This document shows, piece after piece, positions 3,079 through 18,065 of a DNA stretch of 18,359 bases. The stretch comes from Zygophlyctis sp. KS116 (Eukaryota; Fungi; Chytridiomycota). A program made the translations under genes and the position numbers. The notes under the pieces are model-generated. The model did not search any database. It saw only the letters and a list, made by a program, of their open reading frames with translations, and was not told the origin of the DNA. Positions within the stretch are counted from its first letter, which is position 1. Each line of letters begins with the position of its first letter. The stretch spans positions 1 to 18,359 of the forward strand of contig BAAFSQ010000196.1 in NCBI GenBank assembly GCA_054661495.1, written 5' to 3'.

Positions 3079-3697
3079 TTGTTTGTTTAATCACACGCCA
3101 CTTGTTATCATCAGCCTTAATTTCAAAGTTTAAGAATTTAAATACTATCAAGGGATATATAGTCTAGGCCTCGGAAATATAGATAATAATGATTTATGTC
3201 ACAGCTATTGAAAGTCTAGGCATCGACTTTGGCCGGGAACAATGCAAAATAATTATCCAGAGCGATAAATGACTCATTTATAGTCAAAATAGGAGAGAAA
3301 TATCCCGGTTAACCATAATTGAACAGTTGGATCGCTATCATCTATCAGTAAGTACAAGTCTCAAGTAATATTAGGAATTCTCATAATTAAAGATGAAAAG
3401 GAAAAGTCGCAGCCTTATTTGTGCTTGGGGATTGCTCCAAATTGATATTACAATTGATCGGTATCTGAGTAAAAATTCAATTGACTAAAACATGGAATTT
3501 CCAATATTTAAATCTGGAAACTGGATAAGATTCAAACATCATTCTTTAGAACTGGATAGTTTACATATATAGGCTGGTATTAGACAAATTGGCAAAATAT
3601 TTAACCCAGTGGCTATGCTCGGATGATATATTTTGACTCATTTACCAGACAAGTCTCCGATTGCGCGGATAAGTGTTTTCATCAAAATATTTGGAAA
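3079..3697. promoter_or_regulatory. Divergent promoter region between the MAPKK and the PAS receptor, with two AP-1/Gcn4-type sites (ATGACTCAT 3269-3277, TGACTCA 3634-3640)
   Basis: Longest non-coding interval in the window, lying between head-to-head start codons. Motifs are read directly from the sequence; their function is inferred. Confidence 0.45.
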
Positions 3698-6600
3698 ATG
3701 ACTGATACTGTTGGAGAATCAAGTGGACTTTTTAATAATGGTGATGGCATCACGTTTAGATATGTTATGACGATAATTGAGACATCTATTTTTGCAACTG
3801 GATACAAATTGCAGAATAAATTAACTGAAAAACGTCGTTATAGATCGAATGTTTTGACAGCACTTTTTCAAAACTCATTGGATTATGCTCATCTAGTTCC
3901 ATTTTTAGTGCACAGTAAGTTTTTTTCGTGTTTTAAATTTAGGTGGTAAGTGTCGATTACATCATGACTTTTAGGATGGGGATATGGGCGTGTATCTCTT
4001 GCTTGGGCTCAATTTGCATCTTGGATACAGTTGCAGCTTCCTATACTTACGTATGATTCTTTTGCCGTAATTTAATGCTATCTTAAATGGTTAGATTGCC
4101 TTTTGGGTTGTTATTGTAACGTTGGCGATTTTGTTGGCGATGCTGTTCTACATCGCTTTAAGTAATTGGAAAAAATTGCCAATGATTCAGGCTGTAACAT
4201 CAATTACGGCTTTCTATCTTACTAGCGGGTTTCAGGTATTCTTTCCTGTTGCCTTTTATCTTCTTTTCACTCCTTGGCTCTGCGATCCAAAGTCGAAAAC
4301 TCTTTTTGTGATTCAAACATCCACACAATGCTTTGGCTCAACTAATATAATTAGTATCATTTTTGGGACATTTGGAGTTGTTTGCCTGACTGGGTTGTCA
4401 TTCCTGTCCGCTTTTCTTAAAAGTAGTGTGGAGCCTGTTAATAATGATTTTACTGTATCTTGCTTCTTAAATTAATAAGCATATAGATCACTAGCGGAAT
4501 TCTGTTTAAAATTCAGTATTATATTACGATTTCTTTTATGACGATTAATCGTTTCTGGATTTCACCAGCCCTTGGTGCTGAAGGCTATGGCAGTTGGTGG
4601 GAGGCATTGTTGAATCTATTGTCCATGTCACTATTATGCGCAAGTTTGGTTTATTATTTGCCCTATCAAGTATTTTCTTATTATTCTTAGTCTAGGTTCC
4701 TAGAGCAAATCAGCTTCGTGGCACTTTCTTATTTTCGGTCTGGTGGATCTCATGCGTAACATTCATGATGGCTAATATTCCTGAAAATCATGACCATTTT
4801 GATCGACAAATTGATTATATTCTTATGACCGGTATGGGACCATTCTTAATTTTTGGAAACTGGGTTATTAAATCGCGAACTGCTCATTTAGAATGTACGA
4901 TTTTTTAAAGTTAAAGCATAGCATTTGCTGCCTCACTTATCATAGAATCTAAAATAACAAACGAAAATAAGAATCGTGCGGCTCAAAAAGCTGCTGAACT
5001 TAATGCGGAAGTTAAGAAAACAGCTCCCAAAGCTCCTGGTGCTAAAAAGGATGTAGTTAAAGATCCTAAAGCAAAAGAGCCAAAAGGAAAGGATGCAAAA
5101 GCAAACAAAGACGCCACTGGAAAGGCTTCAAAAATTGATTCTACCAAAGATGATCATTCAAATGCAACAGCTGCTGCTCAAAAGGCTGCAATGGCTGCAC
5201 TTGATCAAAAACTTGACGATGACGAGAAAAAAAGAAACGCTCGGCTTTACCTTCCTAGAATACTCCGGGAATATCAGGCAGGAATTACTACTATTGATCT
5301 TGTCGGTCGGATTTTATGGCATTTTTCGGATGACAAAGAGTCGTTAGATGCAGCAAACTCACTTTATGAATCAGCTGAAAAAGCATATCCTGAAGTACCA
5401 TATGTAAAAGTTTTACGAGTCAGTTACTGTACGGCTCAAGCTTCTGATCCATCTGTGCATCTTCCTAAGTTGGATGTCATCAAAAAAATGGACCCTGGTT
5501 TTTTGTCTAGATATTATGTCTACAAACGTTCCGTTGATATTCGAGATAGAGCGAAGGTATCAGCCGTTTCTGATGGTGAAAACTCATTGGATCTTGTTGC
5601 ATATATTGAATTCCAAAACTTGTTTCGGTAAGGATGATTTGCATTTTTTAATTTTAGTGAAACTAAAAAGTATAATAACCGTGCAATTGAATCGATTCGA
5701 GAATTCTGGATGCTTTTCCTGCAGAAGTCAATAAGTATATCCGCCTTTCATCGTGCAGCTAAAGATTTGGAGATTCAATCTCAGCGTGCAGTTTCGGTTT
5801 ATAAGGTATGTTTACACTGCTTTTATTTTAGACGATGATGACCAAATTCCCGAAAAATCCTCAAGTATTGACTTCGTATGCTTATTTTTTGGATTTGGTT
5901 TTGAGAAATACCGAGGAAGCGCAAAGATGCATCAGAAGAGCAGATGAACAAAAGGCACGCGAAGCTGAAGAAGCTCGAAATGGCAATGTTGCTGGTCAGA
6001 TTGATTCCCAAGCTGTTGTGGCCATCACTGAAGACGCATCTATTGATCAGGTGAATAAGGCCTTGCTCGATATGTATGGATATAGCCGAAACGAAGTACT
6101 GGGAAGAAACATTAAGCTTCTTGTCCCAAGTCCTTGGAAAGAAAAGCATGATAATATTCTAGCCAAGTACAGAGCCACCGGAGTCGCGAAAGTAATTGGG
6201 AAAACCCAAACGTAACTTTCCTTTTTTTGATAATAGGTTATACGGCCATCATAAAGAAGGATATGCATTCAGCATGAAGTTGCTGGTTCAGGAGAGAAGA
6301 AAGGAGAATGGCGAGAGAAACTTTATCGGAATGATTCAACAGAGTAATCAAGATTCCAAGTTTGGAGTTGTCATAATTAATGAAATGGGAATTATTAAAA
6401 TGGTAACTCAAAAGACATTAGAACTTTTTGGTGGATATCGTGCTAGCGAACTTTTGAATAAGGTGAAATTTTTCATATTCTAATTTTTAGAATGTAATTA
6501 TTCTAATGATAGATTCTTTTGCCGCTGGGCATGATAATTACCTGAAGAGATACAGAGAGACTGGTGAAGCTCGTGTAATTGGTGGACCTGGGAGAAATAT

Positions 6601-9600
6601 CCCCGCAAAGCGCAAGGATAATACTACTTTTCCTGCTGCCTTGACTGTAGAAGAAGGCTACGCTGATGGTGAACGCTTCTTTTTGGCCAATATCCAAGAT
6701 ACATCAAACGTTGAAGGAACTATATTTATTGATGGTTTTGGAACAATTCAAAATATTGACAGTGGTATTTCTCAACTTTTAGGATATAAAAAGGAAAATG
6801 CTGTTGGAAAAAATATCAAAGTTATCATGCCCTCTCCTTATTGTGACTACCACGATATGTATTTGGAGCGATATCGTAGAACAAAGGTAGCAAACGTTCT
6901 TCGATCACAGGAGGGTCGTGTATTCCCTGCATTACACGCTGATGGCTCGTTAGTTCAGATAAGAGCCTTAATCACAAGAGCTGACAGTGGTGAAACAGGA
7001 GGAAATCTTTTATTTAAGGGGTTCATTCGTCGTGGAAACATGTCTGGATCTGGTCTTAGTGGTGGCCGCAGAGGTTTCCTAGAAAATTATGAAATTGAAT
7101 TAAATAAGGCCGGAATCATTATCAAGCTTACTCGCAAAATCTTATCAATGCTTGGACATCCACAAGAAAGACCTATCAGTGATTTTATTGGACAACCTAT
7201 TGAAGTTCTAATTCCAGTTCTTCCCGATAGACCAATGCAAGCAAAGTCTCACTGGTTGACTCAAGCACTTAAGAATCCAGATCAAAATTTTTATTTAATT
7301 GCTTGTAACAAAAATTATACCCTTCTTCCCGTTACGTTTTGTCTCGATGAAAGGCCTGACGGTTCTATTCGGATGCGCATCAGAGACTTATCGGAATTAG
7401 ATGCATTACTTACAATTGATGAAGTTGGAAATGTACTGAATATGAATGAGGATTCATTTATGCTTCTTGGTTTCGAGCCTGAAGCTACTATAGGCCGCAA
7501 TATCAAGTACATACAGTCTCAAGAGGTCGCTGACCAGCATGATTACTATCTGCAAAGATACAAAGAAACTGGTGTTGCTCGAGTTGTAGGAATAGCTCGA
7601 ACTGTAGATACAGTACATCGTGATGGATCTGTTTTTCCGGTTGAAATTCAGGTTACTGAGCAGGTAAAGGCCGATGGAACTAAAAACTTTGTTGGAAGGC
7701 TTAGACATCGTAAAATAGACGAGAGATGTGAAAAGGAACTCATTTCAAGATACGTAGTCAATACTAGAGCCTTGGGTTCAACATTAGGATCTAGTATTGC
7801 TGGATCTGGCGCACTTCAGTCCTCCACATCTGTTGGATCTGATGGACGAAGAATGAAGTTCAGGGGAAAAAGATCATCAAAAGGATCATCAAAAGCTGAT
7901 GCCATTGGAAATTCATTAATGGGCGTGGGTGCATTAGATAATGAGCATTCTGTTCTATCCAATAGTTTGAATAGTAGTGGCCATGGTAGCTCAAGAAGCG
8001 GTGGATCAAGCTCAGTCTCTTCTAATACGAAATTTTTAACTTTACTAACCAAGCTCAAGTTCCTGAAAAATTCAAACAAAGAAGATCCTTCTCTTTCCCA
8101 ATTCGGTACTGTTCTAAATATTATTCTTGGTATCTATCTGATTTTCTTTGTTACTGGGCTGATTGTTACTAATACTATACAATCACCTGTGAGCTACTAT
8201 GTGCTGATGCAAAATATTCAGAATGTGGACGTTGTGATTAATGAAGTAATAACCGCTGCACGTGTACTTGAATTGACGATAGATAAAGGGATGACTGTAT
8301 CGAACTGTAGCTGGAATCAAATTCATGTATCCAATGATCGTCCCCTCTGTTCTTGGATTAAATCTGGAATTGAAGCAGCAAAAAAACGAAATGATAGCTT
8401 TTTTACTGGAAATTTGACTGGAATATTGCTAGAAGATGGGTCAGTTGATTATGGACTTGTCCCCCAATATACGATAGAATGGATGCTTGGAAACTATACA
8501 AATGAAATGGTTTATCGAACCAATATTCTAAAGCGTGAATACTCAAAGATTCGTGTCCCTGGTGATGTATTTGATCAGGCCATTCAAGGACAGTTCGAAG
8601 TTCTGAGATTTGTTAACGGCGATTGGTCCATTTCAGAACAAGCTGACTTGGTCACTTTTTGGAATGTGTTGGGAACTATATCCTCTGCTATTGATTCATT
8701 AAGGGCAGCAGGATCGATAAATGAAGTTTCTCAGAGAGATTGGGCATTCATTATCTCGAATCGTTACAACTTGATAAGGTTTATAGAAAATATGTGCGAG
8801 ATGATTCCCCCTCAAGCGTCTTCTGCCGTAAACAACACCATGATATTTCATTTCATCATGGCAATTATATCTCTTATTATTGGAATTGTAATTTTATTTT
8901 TAATTACTCTAGGCTTCGTTTTTCTTATTTTTACTTCCAAAAATACAGCAAATAAAGGTCGATCGGGAACGAATTCTTCGCCTCTTGATCCTTATGCCAA
9001 AGTCAGTTGTTTATGATTTGGTTCACCGAGTTTATACTACTAGAAATAGTGAAGAAGAGGAAGATGAGGAAAGTCAAGATGATGAGGATATCGAGGAAGA
9101 CGAGGACGGGGAAGACGAAACTGCAGGGAACGATTCTCAAGAAATTACGGTAATCATTTGTATTGCTAATCGATTAGGTTTTAGCCGATCGTAGCATTGG
9201 CATCTATGTGACATTTGCCGCTGGCCTGATCGCATTGTCATTGCCCTCAATCGTTCATGCAATATATCGTTTTGTAGACAATTCGCAAATTAACCAAACG
9301 ATTAACTTACTGAAAGATTTGAACGTCTTGTATTTGAACATGGAAGCCTTATCTTGGCAGATTTTTGCCGGTTATTTCGAATGCCCTCCGAATTCAGTCT
9401 TTTGCACCTCCCCATATGATAAAGGTGTTCATAACTTTGAGGATGCTATTGATACGGTAAGTTTTTTAATAATTTATGTTTTAGCTTGAGGATGCATATA
9501 CATCTGCCGTCGGTGTTATGCAAGGCTATCCCAAAGTAATCGACGTATTTACCAAATCCCAATGCTTTAACACCCTCAATGGCTTGTATCGATGTGTAAC

Positions 9601-10112
9601 TAGGGATTCTCCCTACATGCCTGAAAATTGGGTGGCCAAGACCTTTAGTGGTTATTCCAATCTTGTTCAAAACTTTATACGTAGTTCCCGCAAGTTTTCA
9701 ACTCGAGTTTTAGAACTTTACAATGTCAACAAGAACCCAGAGGATGTAAGAAAGGACACATTTGTACAAGAGGACTTCCACTATATGTATGAAATCCCAC
9801 TTTTGGAAGGCGAAGCTGGAGCATACCAAGCTATTGATGAATCCATAAAGATTTTGAATGAACAAGTAAGTCACGGTATACTAGCTGCCAATATTTCTTA
9901 TGCAGTTGGACTAGCCTCAAGTTTATTAATTTTCTCTTGGGTCTTTGGTGCTACTAGAAGAAGTGTCCTAGCGGAAACAAGATATGCTCGTGGAGGTAAG
10001 AAGATTTTAAATTTTAATCAAAGTATTATTCATGGTTCCTCATGATGTCCTTCGTAATACAAAGGCCATGATTGAGTATATTGAAAATCTTTATGCATCA
10101 TTGTCTGCCTAA
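3698..10112 (+). CDS. TmcB/TmcC-like (tiny macrocysts / FixL-like PAS) multipass membrane sensor, ~2008 aa. 14 introns: 3915-3942, 3946-3974, 4067-4094, 4455-4486, 4670-4695, 4895-4921, 5628-5657, 5806-5831, 6212-6236, 6463-6490, 8888-8912, 9150-9177, 9457-9484, 9996-10023.
   Basis: 6415 nt minus 388 intron nt = 6027 nt, a single open frame. It encodes an N-terminal multi-TM block with YYLPY, a TPR-like helical region (IREFW...KFPKNPQVLTSYAYFLDLVLRN), five PAS repeats, a Ser/Gly linker, and two TM-loop-TM modules separated by an acidic tract. This matches the TmcB architecture as I recall it. Confidence 0.85.
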
Positions 10113-10543: not shown

Positions 10544-10608
10544 TTTTTGGATTTAGAATTTTCACTTTGATTAGTCAGCAAGATCATGTCATTCGGCGTT
10601 TAAACAAA

Positions 10609-12596
10609 ATGTCCAAAGTCATTTACCAGATCTCTAAATTGCTTATTGATGATGATGCAAATACAGATGATGCAGATGATACAGATGATCGGGAATCATC
10701 AGATAACGAATCATGCTTTAGTCAATCACAATCAATCAGAGATATTGAGAATGATGATGATTCAAATAGCACCGAAGAAGAAGATTCTTTTGAGGAGGAA
10801 AATACAAACTACGAGGCCATTAATGAATCAAGGTTCATGTCGCCGATTAGATCATCATTGTTTACTGGGGGCGATTTGACGATTCGATTCTTAAAAGAGA
10901 ATGAAATCGGTATATTAATAACCGCCTTATTATAGCGTCGCCGCCTTTGATTATTGCATCGAAACTTAAATTCAAGGCTGCAAGAGCTCCAAAAGTTGTC
11001 CAGAATATGTTGAAAAGAATGGGATTTGATCTGGTAAAAACAAAAGGATGGTTTGGTAATTAATGATTTGAAAATATCTTATTACTCAGGATATTGGGGG
11101 AAACACTTGTCTGTAGAAAAATTTAAGAATATTAAACCATTTCAGAAAATCAATCATTTTCCAATGTCATTTGAAATTGGAAGAAAGGACAAAATGTACT
11201 GCAATTGGGAAAAAATGAAGACGATTATGTCAAGAGAGGAGAAATCTCAATTAGATTATTGTCCAGAAACTTTTATTCTTCCAAGAGATCGTGCTAGAGC
11301 CAAAAGAGAATTTTCTAAATACCCATTATGGTAATATACTTACTATTAAATTATTATAGGATTTTAAAACCTCCTGCTTCAGCAAGAGGATTGGGAATAA
11401 AGGTAATTTCAGACTGGTCAACTATACCCAAGAAAAAATCTCTTATTCTTTCAAGATATATCAATAATCCTCTAATAATTGATAAAAAAAAGTTTGATCT
11501 GCGTGTATACTGTCTAGTTACAAGTTTTGATCCACTTTGTATTTAGTAAGCCTATAATCGTTTCATAAAAAGCATCTATGAAAATGGGCTAGTTAGATTT
11601 GCAGCTAATTCTTACAGTTCGCTCAAAAAGACTGCAAAAAACAGATTTGTACATCTTACAAATTATTCAATTTCCAAGAAAAAGAATAATCCTACTCAAG
11701 AAGAAGATGCTGATACCGAGGATAAATTTAGTACAAAGACAAGTAAATGGTAAATATTTATTTTTAAAAACTGCAGGGATTTTGAGATGCTTAAAGACTA
11801 TTTTATGATACATGGAATTGATTACGACAACATTTTCTCTCAAATCCGTCAAATTGTCATTAAAAGTATCATTAGCGTCCAAACTTCAAATGCCAATGCC
11901 TTACACTCATTATTAGATAATTCCAAGTGTTGTTATGAACTTTTTGGATTTGATATTCTACTAGACAACAATTTGAAAGCATGGTTAATAGAAGTGAATA
12001 TATCACCATCTCTAAAAACATCATGCAAAGTAGATCAGAAAGTTAAATCAAATTTGATTGTCGATATTTTTAATTTAGTAGGATATACCATGAATGATGC
12101 TACTGCATATCAAAGATACTCTAGGACAAAGTATTTCCTTAATTTTTAAATTTTAGGAACCTAAAAAAGAATACCACATATTCTCTAAGTCAAGAAGAAC
12201 GAAAAAAACACAGAGATATTTTATTGGGGAAAAACATGAATTGTTTAGAAAATATTACTATTGACGATGCAAGAATTCTTCGCGATATAGAAGATGAGGT
12301 AATATTTGATAAAATTTAAAATTATTTAGTATCACCGAAGAGGATCTTTTCTTCGAGTATATCCAGATACTGATGCTAATGAATTTCAAAAGTTTTTTCA
12401 GCTTCAACCATATTATGATCGCCTCGTGTCTCAATGGGTTCTTACATATCCTTTAGAGAAGCGAATTCAAATCCTTAAAAATATACCAAGCATGCATCTA
12501 AGACAAGGAAATGCTAGAGGATCAGCAAGACTTTCAATCGGTAGTAGTAAAAGTTCAGGCAAAATTGGATCCGGCAAATTTGGACTCAAAGTTTAG
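10609..12596 (+). CDS. TTLL4: Tubulin polyglutamylase, TTLL4-like (595 aa). Introns 10910-10935, 11056-11089, 11331-11359, 11546-11572, 11750-11776, 12131-12156, 12299-12329.
   Basis: Motifs QKINHFPMSFEIGRKD, WILKPPASARGLGI, KFDLRVY, GLVRFA, HLTNYSI and YELFGFDILLD...WLIEVNISPSL. Acidic N-terminus. The spliced length is divisible by 3. Confidence 0.9.
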
Positions 12597-12604
12597 AGAA
12601 AAAA

Positions 12605-12958
12605 ATGCAAATACCAATACTCTATCGATCATTTCTCAAAGCAGCTAATGCATGGCCTAGCCAAGTTGAAAGATCAAGCTCATTCAAATCATTCTTAATC
12701 CAAAAAATCAAAACCCGATTTAGATCAGACAAATTGGATTTAGATTTGGCAAATCAGGAACTGGGAAATTTAACAAGACTTTTAAATAACCAATTAGGAG
12801 ATTCTCTATCTTTGGGTCGGTCTTCCCCGATCCGAGCTTTCCTGCCTCCATCAAAGCAATTTGATTTATTAAATAAATCTTCTCAAGAAAGTATGGCTAA
12901 CGGCTATGTATCAGCCATATCATACCTTAAAGCAAAGATTTCAAGTCTGTTTAAATAA
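12605..12958 (+). CDS. CBP6: Cbp6/UQCC2-like mitochondrial complex III assembly factor (117 aa)
   Basis: LYRSFLKAANAWP..R...FKSFL and ELGNLTRLLNN follow the Cbp6/UQCC2 pattern. The protein is small and basic. Confidence 0.65.
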   Translation: MQIPILYRSFLKAANAWPSQVERSSSFKSFLIQKIKTRFRSDKLDLDLANQELGNLTRLLNNQLGDSLSLGRSSPIRAFLPPSKQFDLLNKSSQESMANGYVSAISYLKAKISSLFK

Positions 12959-13249
12959 TCATTTATTAATCGTTTTTTGAATTGCCAAAATCTTTAACTG
13001 ATCTAGGAAATCTAGCTGAGACAATATAAATGTGTCAATGATGTCTATCGTGGAAGAAGGAGAATTAGATTTGATTGTAGTATCCAATTGTTTAGATTCG
13101 CTAGTCCGATCAACTGGTTTATTTTGTAAAGATGCAACAGACTCTAGATCATTCATAACTTCCTCTATTTCCTCAAACTCTTCAAAAGATTCATTTGAAT
13201 ACTCATCAAAATCATTAATTGATTCATATGATTGTGACAACTTCATCAT
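12959..13249 (-). CDS. Hypothetical acidic protein (96 aa)
   Basis: Intact ATG-to-TGA ORF that fills the gap between neighbouring genes. Acidic N-half and an amphipathic C-terminal helix. No family recognised. Confidence 0.5.
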   Translation of the reverse strand: MMKLSQSYESINDFDEYSNESFEEFEEIEEVMNDLESVASLQNKPVDRTSESKQLDTTIKSNSPSSTIDIIDTFILSQLDFLDQLKILAIQKTINK

Positions 13250-13286
13250 TGCGGAAATATTAATTCACAGCATAAATGTAATATAG

Positions 13287-14339
13287 TTAATCAAATATAG
13301 ATTCATTGAGTCTTGGCATTTTCCCCTTTTCTTTAAAAAAGACATTTCCAATTTTAGAAATGAGTCTTTTCCTTGTTTTCAAAAGAGCTAATAAAGAGTC
13401 TGGTATTGGTCTACTTTCACCTAAATTCTTCTTCTTTGCTTTTTTAAATGCAGCTTGTCTTTTAGAGTATGATGATTGTATGGCCTTGTTTAATTCGTCT
13501 AATAATGATGAATATTCTTGATACGCCATCCATTTTTTAGCTAAATTTGATACTTTTGCTTTTCTTTGCGAATTAATTTCAGAGACTGATTCATATTCTG
13601 TGTTTAATGTACCTAATTCTGCTGCAATTTGATCTCCTGAAGACTGATTGCCAAGACTTGAATTTACTAGTGAATTACCAATATTAACTCCCAAAAACCC
13701 CAATTCTTTTCCAATTTTATCTTCAATTTCCATTAAATTCTTTGTACTATCTAAAGGTGGTACATATGCATCATGATCCATTAATGAATCTGGTACAACT
13801 CTTAAAACTGTTTCTGGAACTAAACAAGCCAACAAATTCTCAGCCAATGGTCCTAGAGTCTTACAAGGATAAACTGTATCATTCATTTCTATAAAATCCT
13901 TTTCATTTTGTACATAAATCCCTTGATACAATAACGCATCTTCTTCTGCCCATTTTTGAGAGTAATGTCTTCCTAATTCTGGTGTAAAGAGTCTATGAGG
14001 CCTAGTATCTAATCTAGCAAGATCTGAAACCGTCAATGGTCTAGTCATTTGATCTACAAAATTCCAAAACTGAGAGACTTGAATCTGATGAGATGGAGCC
14101 TTGATCTTTGAGAAATCAGATCCAACAATGAGAGGAGGCGGAGGAATATTAATTGGATCATTGTAATATAAACAAGGCACAGACTGTACAGCTTTACAAT
14201 TAAATTTCCAACCAGCATTAGTAATTTTTAAATTTGAATTTAGAATTTCTAAATATTTCTCAAGTTGATTTAATTCATCCGGCAGCTCTAAAAGATGAGA
14301 ATCTTGTATCAAAATCTCTGGAATTTTAGGAAATTGCAT
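13287..14339 (-). CDS. NGG1: SAGA/ADA histone acetyltransferase module subunit Ada3/Ngg1 (~350 aa, apparently intronless)
   Basis: DFSKIKAP..QI.VSQFWNFV...RPLT..DL, PELGRHYSQKWAEED, GPLAENLLACL, EDKIGKELGFLG, DQIAAEL and MAYQEY...LDEL...I...Y.KR are Ada3 hallmarks. The first ATG is at 14339. Confidence 0.88.
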   Translation of the reverse strand: MQFPKIPEILIQDSHLLELPDELNQLEKYLEILNSNLKITNAGWKFNCKAVQSVPCLYYNDPINIPPPPLIVGSDFSKIKAPSHQIQVSQFWNFVDQMTRPLTVSDLARLDTRPHRLFTPELGRHYSQKWAEEDALLYQGIYVQNEKDFIEMNDTVYPCKTLGPLAENLLACLVPETVLRVVPDSLMDHDAYVPPLDSTKNLMEIEDKIGKELGFLGVNIGNSLVNSSLGNQSSGDQIAAELGTLNTEYESVSEINSQRKAKVSNLAKKWMAYQEYSSLLDELNKAIQSSYSKRQAAFKKAKKKNLGESRPIPDSLLALLKTRKRLISKIGNVFFKEKGKMPRLNESIFD

Positions 14340-14365
14340 GGCCACCCACTCCTATGCATTGGAAA

Positions 14366-14639
14366 ATGGTCAAATTAGATACAGGAGAATGCACAATTAA
14401 TAATCTTCAAATAGCATCAACTATTCTTGGGATGCAAGTCTCGGCGGACATTAAAAGTAATTGTGAATTGGGATATCTCAACGATGTACCGGTCGCTGCA
14501 GTGATTTGGGATTTGGAATATAATATTACACAATTAATAGTATTGCAAGATTATAAAGGATGGGGACTGGGTAATTATTTTATTTTAAATCTTTAAAGAA
14601 GAATTATTGAATAATCATGTTCAATCATTAAAGGGCTAG
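14366..14639 (+). CDS. Short NAA50/Nat5-like GNAT protein (81 aa) lacking the C-terminal half of the fold. Intron 14571-14598.
   Basis: MVKLDTGECTINNL...LGYLNDVPVAAV...ITQLIVLQDYKGWGLEELLNNHV aligns by eye with NAA50 (IELGDVTPHN...LAYFNDIAVGAV...IMTLGCLAPYRRLGIG.KMLNHV). Alternative ATG at 14354. Confidence 0.6.
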
Positions 14640-14646
14640 AGAATAA

Positions 14647-16972
14647 ATGTTTTTATTTTTGAGATTGAGATATTATTCAAGAATTAGGAATGCTGGGATC
14701 ATTGCTCATATAGATGCAGGGAAGACAACACTGACAGAGCGGATGTTGTATTATGCTGGTTATACAAGTAGAATTGGAAGTATTTAGAATTATTAAAGAG
14801 ATTAGATGTAGATGATGGGTCGACAGTGACAGATTGTTTACCGATGGAAAGGAAAAGAGGAATTACAATTTCATCTGCATGCATTCCTCTTGGTTGGAAA
14901 GATTACAAGATTAATTTAATTGATACGCCAGGCCATGTGGATTTTACAATTGAAGTTGAAAGATCAATGAGAGTGTTAGATGGGGCTGTTGTAGTTTTAG
15001 ATGGGGTGGCTGGTGTCGAGGCTCAAACTCAAAATGTATGGGAGCAAGCGAATAGATATTCTGTTTCGCGGATTGCATTCATAAACAAGATGGATAGGGA
15101 TGGATCGAGTTTTTTAAAAACTGTACAAGAAATGGATAAATTAAAAGGCGCTGGGAAAGCAGTCATGATTCAATGGCCGTTAAGTTTAGATGAGTCGGTA
15201 CTTAACACTAGTAGTAAATTTAGGTTTTTATAAGAAATGGGAATGGAGGGTCAGGGTTCAATAGGGTTATAGATCTTATTGATATGACTGTACTTGATTG
15301 GGATCACGATGCTATCAATCAATCTAAAATAAGAAAAACCAAATTTGATGATTTTATAAAGCAAGAAAAGCATTCAAATTTAGATGTTTTAGTGCAAGGT
15401 ATACCTAAAATGTAAAATATAATAATAGTGGTTCGTGAAAAAAGAATTCAATTGATTGAAACACTATCAGAAATGGATGAAGAAATAATTAATACGTTTT
15501 TAGATGTTGATGCAGATCATTTTAAAGTACCTTCAAAAGATATTAGGAATTCTCTGCGAAGATTGACAATTTTGGGAAAATGTGTACCTACGCTTTGTGG
15601 AGCTGCATTTAGAAATATTGGGATTCAGCCATTGATGGATAGTATGGTTGATTTTTTACCATCACCAGAAAATACTCCCATGCCAGAAAATGTGGATTTT
15701 ACTTCAAATAATCTATCTGCTTTAGCATTTAAAGTTCTGGATGATGAAAAAAGAGGGCCATTGGTTTTTGTTCGAGTATATTCAGGTATTTTTTAAATAT
15801 TCTAATCGTTAGGGTCAATAAAGGCTCGATCCATGTTGCGAAATGTGAATCAAAATGTCAAAGAGACTGTAGGAAAATGTTTGCAGATGTATGCAGATGA
15901 ATATGAGGAAATTCCAATGATCGGCTGTGGAAGCATTGCCGCGGTTTCAGGCTTAAAAGTTACACAAACAGGAGATACGCTCTCTAGTTGGAATGATAAA
16001 TCTACTACATCTCTTTATCCATTGTCATTAGCACCTCCTGTCATAAGTAGATCGCTGCAAGCTGAATCACTTGAAGAAGAGAAAAAATTGATGCATGCTT
16101 TGGATATTCTAAAACGAGAGGACCCCTCAATCCGTGTATTTACCGATGAAGAAACTGGACAACTATTGCTTAGTGGTATGGGTGAGCTTCACTTAGAAAT
16201 CTGTACCGAAAAATTAATGAACAGACACAAGGTGAATTTTAGCGTTGGTCCTGTCTCTGTATCATTTCGGCAGTCTATTTTTGTGGATGCTAAAAATCAA
16301 AATGGAATATTTGAAAAAGAAATACTTGGTAAAAATGTCAAAATAGGATTCGAATTTGATTTGTCACCGCTCAATATGATTTCAAATCAAGTTATTCCTG
16401 CCTCATCTACAATCAATAAGGTGGATGTGTTATTAGACAAACAAAGTATATTCATAAAAGATCGGCCACTGAAAGATGTGCAACAGAGTAATATTCCCTC
16501 TCATCTTCCTCCGATAGAAAAAGTCTTGGATGCTGTGCGCATGGGGCTACAAAATAGTTTAGATCGTGGTTCTTCACAACGGCATCCCTTTATCAATACA
16601 CATGTCACCTTGAAAAAAATACACTTACTAGATGGATATCCTTTTAGTGAAGGCCTGCTAAAAATGGCATCCTATAGTTGTCTGAACAGAATTCTTATGT
16701 CAATTGAAAGCGTAGTTCTAGAGCCTGCAATGAACCTTGATATTCAAATACATGATAAGCATTTGAAGGCAGTGTCAAAGGATCTTCTTAATTTTCGGAA
16801 TGGGAATATTCTATCACTGAATGATTCTTCTTCAGAACTGAAAAGACTATCAGCAATCCTACCTGTGTCTGGGCTGGAAGGATATTCGTCCCATTTCAGA
16901 AGTTTAACTAAAGGAGTTGGCACCTTCTCTTATTCTTTCCATGGATTTGCTCCAAAAAACAGTTCTTTATGA
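14647..16972 (+). CDS. MEF2: Mitochondrial EF-G2 / ribosome-releasing factor 2 (738 aa). Introns 14780-14805, 15198-15223, 15399-15428, 15786-15812.
   Basis: Short presequence [11 protein letters not shown], then [57 protein letters not shown] and EDPS...[16 protein letters not shown]. The divergent domain IV fits EF-G2mt better than EF-G1. Confidence 0.88.
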
Positions 16973-17053
16973 AATTATCCATGGTTCAAATAATATTAAA
17001 AATAATAGTTTTTCATTTTTGCATCCTGAACAATGTTACACAAACTCCACATT

Positions 17054-18065
17054 TTAGTGAGAGTGTTCGCTTAACCATTCTTCGACAGTTTCTAGAGCTC
17101 CAAAGCATAAAAACATCCCCAAAAAGAATGATAAACTTGATCGTACTTTTCCTGAATATTTAATTGCCATGGGAATCAATTCACTAATATTAAATCTAAA
17201 AATACTTACTGAATCGATACACACATCATCATTCCTCCGACCATTGCCAAACATCTACTTAAAAGTTCATGACTGAGATAAGGATATAAAAGCGACCCTC
17301 CAATAATAACTCCTGCAGGCTCTGCCAAACCATTTAAAAAAGTCCAAAACAAAACTGAAGAATATGAATTCGTAGCTCCATACAATGGAATTGCGACTGC
17401 CATTCCTTCGGGTATCTAGATATTTAAAAACAACCAGGCATACATTATGCAACATAATCCCAATCGCCAACTGAAGTCCCAATTTAGTATCCGAAAGAGC
17501 CGATAAATAAACACCCAATCCTTCAGGCAAATTATGCAATCCCATTGCTAAAAATGTGATTAAACTTGTTCTCTTCATTTGATCTTTTTCCAAGGATGAT
17601 TTTGATTTTTTCTTTGGTGAAGCCTTTGATGATCGTGTTAGTTTTGGAGATTGTACTTGTTCTCTGATCTCATCAACATCTGAATCATGATCATCAGGAA
17701 CAAAATATTCCAGAAACCCAAATATAACAACACCAGCAAAAAAATAACACCTATAATTCTGAAAAAAAAAACAATAATTACATTGTCTCTCGATGACCCA
17801 GAATTTGTATTGCCTCTGGAACCAAATCAAAACTAGTGATATAAAGCATTACACCTGCTGAGAAAGCCTGTAAAACACCCATCAAAAGCTTTGTATCTAA
17901 TGATTTCGGATCAGAATATAAAGATGTAACTAGAATTACAAGTAATCCACCTAAAAACGTTCCCATTGATGCAATAAATGCCAACCAAAATGCCACAAGA
18001 TGAGCGCCGTCCACAGATTCATCCATTGTCCTCTGCAACCAATCATAAATCCAACTTGACGACAT
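17054..18065 (-). CDS. ZIP family (ZupT/GufA-type) divalent metal transporter (308 aa). Introns 17751-17781, 17416-17443, 17184-17209.
   Basis: AFSAGVMLYITSFDLVPEA, MGLHNLPEGLGV, IMLHNIPEGMAVAIP, GLAEPAG and SIHELIP; multiple TM segments. Confidence 0.92.

Follow-up and report, generated by a model that had tools for sequence, protein, structure and literature searches.

The 18,359-nucleotide (nt) stretch of DNA analysed here (the window) is contig BAAFSQ010000196.1 of the chytrid Zygophlyctis sp. KS116 (GenBank assembly GCA_054661495.1), and it carries on its plus strand one long gene for a membrane protein with TPR and PAS domains. A minimal-intron path search placed this gene at 3623..10112, with 14 exons, 6,099 coding nt and a product of ~2,032 amino acids (aa). 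Between the ATG at 3623 and the stop codon TAA (10110-10112), the path yields a single unbroken frame with 13 GT..AG introns, twelve of which measure 25-32 nt and the first one (3915-3974) 60 nt. Read with the standard code, the region (G+C content of 35-40 %) appears as a chain of open segments in shifting frames. The preliminary description of this DNA had proposed one giant membrane protein at 3698-10112. The single protein and its end stand, and the start has to be corrected in part, since the Met codon at 3698 lies in frame 25 codons downstream of the ATG at 3623; either of the two may be the true start. The first intron, twice as long as the rest, contains AG-GTG-GTAAGT and could be two ultra-short introns that flank a 3-nt micro-exon.

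In the encoded protein, a cytoplasmic cassette made of a TPR domain and five PAS domains lies between an N-terminal bundle of ~7 transmembrane (TM) helices and two modules that each consist of a TM helix, a predicted four-helix ectodomain and a second TM helix; on either side, the cassette is held by a linker of low complexity (Table 1). We propose, with a probability of about 60 %, that this is a polytopic membrane protein of the TmcB family in which four predicted b-type haem-PAS domains report intracellular O2, with nitric oxide (NO) or carbon monoxide (CO) as the alternative, and whose output is non-enzymatic.

This proposal starts from the PAS array. A six-frame scan of the 18.4-kb window with the motif HD-x-[YIFL]-[LIV]-x-[RK]-Y-[RK]-x-T gave exactly four matches, all on the plus strand, with His codons at 6147, 6530, 6851 and 7538, the very positions given in the preliminary description. 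Pfam and sequence searches of the spliced model were run exon by exon. With exon 10 as query against all PDB chains, phmmer ranked the FixL haem domains first (1xj4, 1dp6 and 1d06; E 3e-17 to 2e-16) and EcDOS/DosP next. Used alone, PAS3 found BjFixL (E 2e-12) and PAS5 found RmFixL (E 1.1e-14 over 102 residues with one gap), PAS5 being the nearest to FixL among the five PAS domains. For these three queries, the significant PDB matches are haem-PAS chains only (FixL, DosP/EcDOS). Beyond the proximal His, the match to FixL extends to the Tyr/Arg/Tyr of the F helix, to an I/V-I/V-G stretch (for which PAS3 has VLRS), to the FG-loop Arg and to the F-P...L.V strand. In FixL, the proximal F-helix His (His200 in BjFixL) ligates the haem, and the FG-loop Arg (BjFixL Arg220) hydrogen-bonds bound O2. 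HMMER aligned this Arg to the Arg of GGPGR (PAS2), SQEGR (PAS3) and GIAR (PAS5). Judged from these alignments, PAS1, PAS2, PAS3 and PAS5 keep the FixL haem pocket, and PAS2, PAS3 and PAS5 keep in addition the O2-holding Arg. Both the FixL-type repeats and the distribution of the Arg, said to be present in these three domains and missing from PAS1, had been correctly recognised beforehand.

The same is true of the degenerate PAS announced at ~7100-7390. The stretch 7067-7390 has no His and, as a single sequence, finds no match in the PDB, yet in a profile of 17 family sequences the N-terminal half does match PAS domains (CitA PASc 4e-4; FixL, PER and CLOCK ~0.4), and this half is also the only part matched by the PAS hidden Markov model (HMM); we therefore take it as a degenerate haem-less PAS (PAS4). 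As for the output, Pfam found no enzyme domain in any exon or in six homologues, including the HisKA/HATPase_c kinase core, which agrees with the lack of an output enzyme noted earlier. Since it has no kinase domain, the protein is not a FixL but merely a bearer of FixL-type PAS domains. The HMM search for PAS and TmcB domains that had been suggested as a check detects both with Pfam models.

The affiliation to the TmcB family is based on the TPR_TmcB domain (PF25474) and on a layout in which TPR, PAS and two TM pairs come after an N-terminal multi-TM domain. When in-frame neighbours are joined, the TPR_TmcB score rises above the 27-bit cut-off (homologues score 80-98 bits), and exon 6 matches the TPR regions of the family in local phmmer searches with E values of 1e-26 to 1e-73. 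Word-index homologue searches returned mostly close metagenomic relatives; an exhaustive HMMER search collected 17,567 proteins at E <= 1e-3, of which 249 at E <= 1e-30. Members with the same layout are found in Quaeritorhiza haematococci (two tandem genes), Rozella allomycis, Coelomomyces lativittatus and Blastocladiella emersonii (at least five) and, beyond fungi, in Cyanophora paradoxa, Chlamydomonas eustigma and Edaphochlamys debaryana, annotated throughout as hypothetical or 'PAS domain-containing'. The layout common to members in four fungal phyla, a glaucophyte and green algae comprises 6-7 TM helices, the TPR domain, the PAS array and 4 TM helices.

Conservation within the array is specific to position. 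In a residue table that includes metagenomic clades, the His of PAS1, PAS2 and PAS3 is kept in almost every fungal member, and that of PAS5 in the chytrid group, Coelomomyces and Cyanophora. The FG-loop Arg is found almost everywhere in PAS2 and PAS3, and in PAS5 of most members that retain its His, while PAS4 is haem-less in all members of the table. Because this pattern recurs across lineages, the five-PAS array must be older than the split of these fungal phyla, and the comparison indicates that the haem-pocket residues are under long-term constraint. A maximum-likelihood tree of the PAS2-5 region places a protein with 81 % identity (P0163) closest to the window copy, followed by a clade that includes two other contigs of the same assembly (C555 and C557); this entire group and Quaeritorhiza are sisters (support 100/99). 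The presumed origin from an early-diverging fungus can thus be specified as zoosporic-fungal, and the presumed kinship to TmcB-type proteins with TM, TPR and PAS parts, chlamydomonad ones included, is substantiated by PF25474 and by the C. eustigma and Edaphochlamys homologues. The claim of novelty has to be lowered, since a Pfam model and GenBank homologues from chytrids, Rozella and Blastocladiomycota exist: this fungal member of the TmcB family is new, the family itself is already known and barely studied.

Two side observations concern the relatives. The Quaeritorhiza protein KAJ3090545.1 (P0020), encoded in tandem with its paralogue KAJ3090546.1, is deposited as a model that is short of one N-terminal TM helix (residues ~290-300) and stops after the first C-terminal module; compared with all relatives, this shortfall probably reflects incomplete annotation. 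Among P0002-P0039 (e.g. P0003, P0006 and P0037), metagenomic proteins of 1,700-4,500 aa display 13 FixL-type PAS domains, with all His, most Arg and many TM pairs. One of them (P0006) has a TPR_TmcB domain (50.9 bits), and from their sequences these proteins look like giant relatives of the TmcB family with a larger haem-PAS array.

Regarding topology, hydropathy, alignments and AlphaFold2 (AF2) models put the loops that contain Cys on the extracellular side and the TPR-PAS cassette in the cytoplasm, which fits haem-PAS domains as they require this compartment. The N-terminal domain has a conserved extracellular P..C.P...L.......C loop as well as LPY and NR..D motifs. It was modelled on the Blastocladiella homologue as a proxy (predicted local distance difference test, pLDDT, of 74.9) because the window copy is split over five short exons. 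In the model of the first ectodomain (26 sequences, pLDDT 83.6), four helices form a bundle into which a beta-hairpin is inserted, and two of its Cys are invariant. Searched in the Atlas, this model gave nothing above helical-protein noise, and an Atlas feature search retrieved unnamed eukaryotic clusters only. From the end of the PAS5 match to the next TM helix, the gap amounts to ~115 aa in the family member P0153 and ~290 aa in Blastocladiella. No other C-terminal segment is as widely conserved in the family as the juxtamembrane one at 8941..9149. A cytoplasmic motif of the type R-x-x-L-hydrophobic x3-P-x-x-V follows both modules (LLILMPKSVV, 8941-9010; LFMVPHDVL, 10024-10080). An internal duplication of the two modules, as suggested by these alike motifs, was considered and set aside, their profile similarity being weak (hhalign probability 21 %).

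Table 1. Features of the TmcB-type gene and of its neighbours in the window.
Feature	Position	Strand	Basis and remarks
Whole coding region	3623..10112	+	Path search and collinear tblastn with family members (3758-10103)
N-terminal multi-pass membrane domain, ~7 TM helices, exons 1-5	3623..4894	+	Hydropathy, family alignment
Lys/Ala/Asp-rich low-complexity linker, ~100 aa, start of exon 6	4922..5211	+	Translation; no Pfam match
TPR_TmcB (PF25474), exons 6-8	5212..5966	+	Pfam, 21.0 bits (exon 7) and 25.2 bits (exon 8)
PAS1	5985..6340	+	His codon 6147-6149; Gln at FixL Arg220 position; intron 6212-6236 inside; Pfam PAS_9 7.8e-08
PAS2	6345..6700	+	His codon 6530-6532; FG-loop GGPGR with Arg; intron 6463-6490 inside; aligned to BjFixL residues 49-108 (1xj4)
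PAS3	6701..7066	+	His codon 6851-6853; FG-loop SQEGR, two-residue insertion relative to FixL; BjFixL E 2e-12, full domain
PAS4, degenerate, without haem-ligand His	7067..7390	+	No His in any orthologue; family-profile match to CitA PASc
PAS5	7391..7765	+	His codon 7538-7540; FG-loop GIAR; RmFixL 1d06 E 1.1e-14, EcDOS 4.6e-07; Pfam PAS 2.3e-11
Ser/Gly-rich linker, ~110 aa, probably disordered, PAS5 to next TM	7766..8089	+	Translation
C-terminal module 1: TM, ectodomain of ~215 aa, TM	8090..8940	+	AF2 pLDDT 83.6; intron 8888-8912 within second TM
Conserved juxtamembrane motif (RERILRLLILMPKSVVYDLVHRVY), then acidic linker	8941..9149	+	Local phmmer to Blastocladiella, Cyanophora and the 2,720-aa P0098
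C-terminal module 2: TM, Cys-containing ectodomain, TM, exons 12-13	9178..9995	+	Hydropathy, family alignment
C-terminal tail, second copy of post-TM motif (LFMVPHDVL...EYIENL) and stop	10024..10112	+	P0153 residues 1581-1607 align here
TTL-family tubulin ligase	11787-12149	+	Pfam
UQCC2/Cbp6	12605-12958	+	Pfam
Ada3	13287-14345	−	Pfam; environmental relatives only (97 % and 72 % identity)
EF-G-type GTPase	14826-16972	+	Pfam
ZIP transporter fragment	17267-17830	−	Pfam

Compared with the rhizobial FixL proteins (BjFixL 1xj4/1dp6, RmFixL 1d06), the chytrid protein shares, besides the pocket elements listed above, the PAS fold, the HD-x-Y-[LI]-x-RY-[RK]-x-T His motif and the propionate-binding basic residues. 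However, FixL has a single haem-PAS and is a histidine kinase, whereas the chytrid protein is a polytopic eukaryotic membrane protein with four haem-type PAS domains and without HisKA/HATPase. With the TmcB family it shares the TPR_TmcB domain, and every member examined begins with a multi-TM domain, continues with TPR and PAS and has four TM helices in its C-terminal part; this likeness refers to the Pfam model and to the fungal and algal members. In Dictyostelium, whose tiny macrocysts proteins B/C (TmcB/C) stand for the family, the tmc genes are reportedly linked to macrocyst size and cAMP signalling. In green algae, the PAS domains of Chlamydomonas FXL1 and FXL5 reportedly bind haem and O2 (a finding attributed to FEBS Lett 2012). 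Our own algal comparison concerns the related TmcB-type proteins of C. eustigma (P0175) and Edaphochlamys (P0176). Both have TPR_TmcB and PAS domains, the same TM layout and the FixL His in the first PAS, but the His is present in one PAS only and the distal Arg is absent, in contrast to the 3-4 His-bearing PAS domains and the Arg of PAS2 and PAS3 in the fungal proteins.

Mechanistically, each of PAS1, PAS2, PAS3 and PAS5 would bind one b-type haem, and the array would report intracellular O2 or, alternatively, NO or CO. Ligand binding may alter the packing of the PAS array, and this altered packing could in turn change either the binding of partners by the TPR domain or the way in which the cassette docks on the membrane modules at their juxtamembrane motifs. 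Extracellular input would probably be supplied by the two ectodomains. The output is most likely non-enzymatic because no enzyme domain was found and because the linkers are too flexible to act as a rigid relay of helices.

Several observations weigh against this view of the protein and are best considered together with the alternatives. PAS1 has a Gln in place of the FG-loop Arg (GKTQ-T, with an intron that splits the Thr codon), and the FG loops of PAS2 and PAS3 exceed the FixL length by one and two residues, respectively. These deviations, and the additional matches of PAS5 and PAS3 to EcDOS/DosP, would suit a protein that binds haem but takes NO, CO or the redox state of its haem iron as signal, in the manner of certain sensors of the DosP/EcDOS and NPAS2 types. 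We consider such a signal rather unlikely, given that three domains retain the distal Arg across phyla and that FixL is far ahead of DosP (for PAS5, E 1e-14 vs 5e-07). The haem-PAS of E. coli DosP/EcDOS, which is the second-best PDB match of PAS3 and PAS5 (E 5e-07 to 3e-03), is coupled to GGDEF/EAL enzymes and has Met95 as distal ligand, unlike the chytrid protein, which is devoid of such an output. The graded ligand affinities suggested in the preliminary description are plausible for PAS1, the argument being its Gln alone; among orthologues, this position is occupied by Gln in some and by Arg in others.

A second group of observations concerns the membrane parts, neither of which convincingly matches any solved fold. 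The N-terminal model resembles no solved channel, transporter or receptor (Foldseek-PDB E > 0.3; VIA Z < 8). For the first ectodomain, Foldseek finds no PDB relative, and the best VIA matches (NarQ, Z 11.5; Tsr, Tar, TorS and PcaY, ~10) remain below the ~13 needed for helical bundles and within the unspecific range of the tool. In addition, the long disordered linkers prevent the signalling route from being deduced from the sequence. It is conceivable, though in our opinion improbable, that the membrane parts form an ion-conducting or transport path gated by the haem-PAS array; the protein would then work as a channel or transporter under gas control and not as a receptor of the scaffold type. 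The ~11 TM helices, the conserved polar motifs (LPY, NR..D and post-TM LFMVP) and the missing enzyme output would be in line with a gated path, as would the detection of a Chlamydomonas 'tiny macrocysts protein B-related' protein in a cilia methylome (PMC11244166), cilia being rich in sensory channels. The lack of similarity to solved channels and transporters argues in the opposite direction, together with the C-terminal ectodomains, which look more like four-helix sensor bundles than like pore loops, and with the TPR domain, which suggests partner binding.

We judge it more doubtful still that the PAS domains have ceased to bind haem and now serve as dimerisation or interaction modules, or as binders of other small molecules, with the His kept for structural reasons. 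PAS4 shows that the array tolerates a haem-less PAS, and the PAS5 His has been lost from the Blastocladiella copies, so not every position is indispensable. Nevertheless, the His, Tyr, Arg, Tyr, I/V-I/V-G, Arg and FP...L.V elements are jointly kept in four domains over deep divergence, and every significant PDB match is a haem-PAS domain, both of which favour haem binding.

Finally, the gene model itself has to be weighed. The 20 matching public runs are all DNA-type metagenome assemblies (freshwater, estuary or wastewater; 13 studies), and contigs from 4 of them contain every intron, so transcription and splicing are deduced from homology alone. The intron junctions are supported by homologous proteins that align collinearly across them. 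In tblastn searches, P0153 is collinear over 5233-10103 and spans seven of the eight introns there without residue loss (introns 7-12 and 14), no part of it aligning to exon 13, and the Quaeritorhiza protein P0020 is collinear from 3758 to 8698. Exon 10 (6491-8887; 799 codons) encodes the second half of PAS2, PAS3, PAS4, PAS5, the Ser-rich linker, a TM helix, the ectodomain and most of the second TM helix, and the PAS array and the membrane module are therefore certainly part of one polypeptide. That the long gene is a model artefact and that two or more genes in fact make up the locus is very hard to believe, even if exons 1-9 are linked solely through predicted ultra-short introns and the matching runs include none of transcripts, because this single exon unites PAS2-5 with the membrane module, homologues cross the junctions intact and the same layout is annotated as a single protein in at least seven named species.

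Oxygen sensing in fungi is described as indirect, via the synthesis of sterols and haem (SREBP and Hap1-type pathways). The TmcB-type protein is, on the strength of its sequence, a good candidate for a direct sensor of O2 or another gas in fungi. A review on fungal hypoxia (PMC7434965) does not mention FixL, and none of its occurrences of 'PAS' refers to a haem-PAS sensor. Our literature search found no paper joining 'FixL' and 'chytrid', and in a wider search none of the matches listed joins 'FixL' with a zoosporic-fungus or Dictyostelium term; nor did searches on TmcB, tiny macrocysts, FXL1/FXL5 and FixL in combination with zoosporic fungi bring up any primary description. If the PAS domains bind haem, zoosporic fungi would own a bacterial-type direct gas sensor embedded in a eukaryote-specific membrane protein, present in ~8-10 copies in one 12.7-Mb genome and conserved from Rozella to chytrids. 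The TmcB family, widespread but functionally blank, would then gain a molecular function. Given that the organism occurs in freshwater metagenomes (13 studies), the sensor may matter for lake chytrids in finding their hosts or in coping with oxygen gradients. Going further, and with little confidence, one may imagine that zoosporic fungi, in contrast to yeasts and moulds, use a direct haem-based O2 sensor with up to four haems that integrates the intracellular gas level and extracellular ligands of the two ectodomains, and that would act without any enzyme, by gating an ion flux or by recruiting TPR partners, for instance in zoospore aerotaxis or encystment; the 13-PAS environmental proteins would be extreme versions of it.

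The copy in the window is one of several in the assembly. Matches to TPR_TmcB or FixL-type PAS are spread over ~10 contigs of the 12.7-Mb assembly (1,175 contigs), corresponding to ~8-10 paralogous loci. Contigs C434, C810, C553, C555, C557, C68, C52, C98 and C488 carry further TmcB-type or FixL-type PAS arrays. Three of these contigs are 87 % identical to the PAS5 of the window, and these copies may have arisen by recent duplication or represent haplotigs. Over more than 1,000 codons, C555 and C557 are free of introns, and a single FixL-like PAS is the only Pfam domain in a 429-aa open frame of C488. A cyclase output was also considered and rejected, the Guanylate_cyc loci (C71, C219, C80 and C199) being distinct from those with close relatives of the PAS array.

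Among the first 40 of 77 strain differences, 13 are synonymous, 22 non-synonymous and 5 intronic, which suggests mild constraint overall, with replacements mostly outside the PAS pockets. In the second ectodomain (9388-9648), five of the six differences among those listed change an amino acid, versus four of seven in the PAS region; this ectodomain may be fast-evolving, although the numbers are small. One abundant strain of a freshwater metagenome (run X3) differs at sites 4594, 5321, 5477 and 7872 by a 3-nt insertion, 20-nt and 1-nt deletions and a 12-nt deletion. The 20-nt and 1-nt deletions sum to 21 nt and shift ~52 codons of the TPR region, and the 12-nt deletion falls in the Ser-rich linker; these indels may represent a real allele or an alignment effect. 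Downstream of the TmcB-type gene, the neighbouring genes recognised by Pfam lie within positions 10567-17830 of the window (Table 1).

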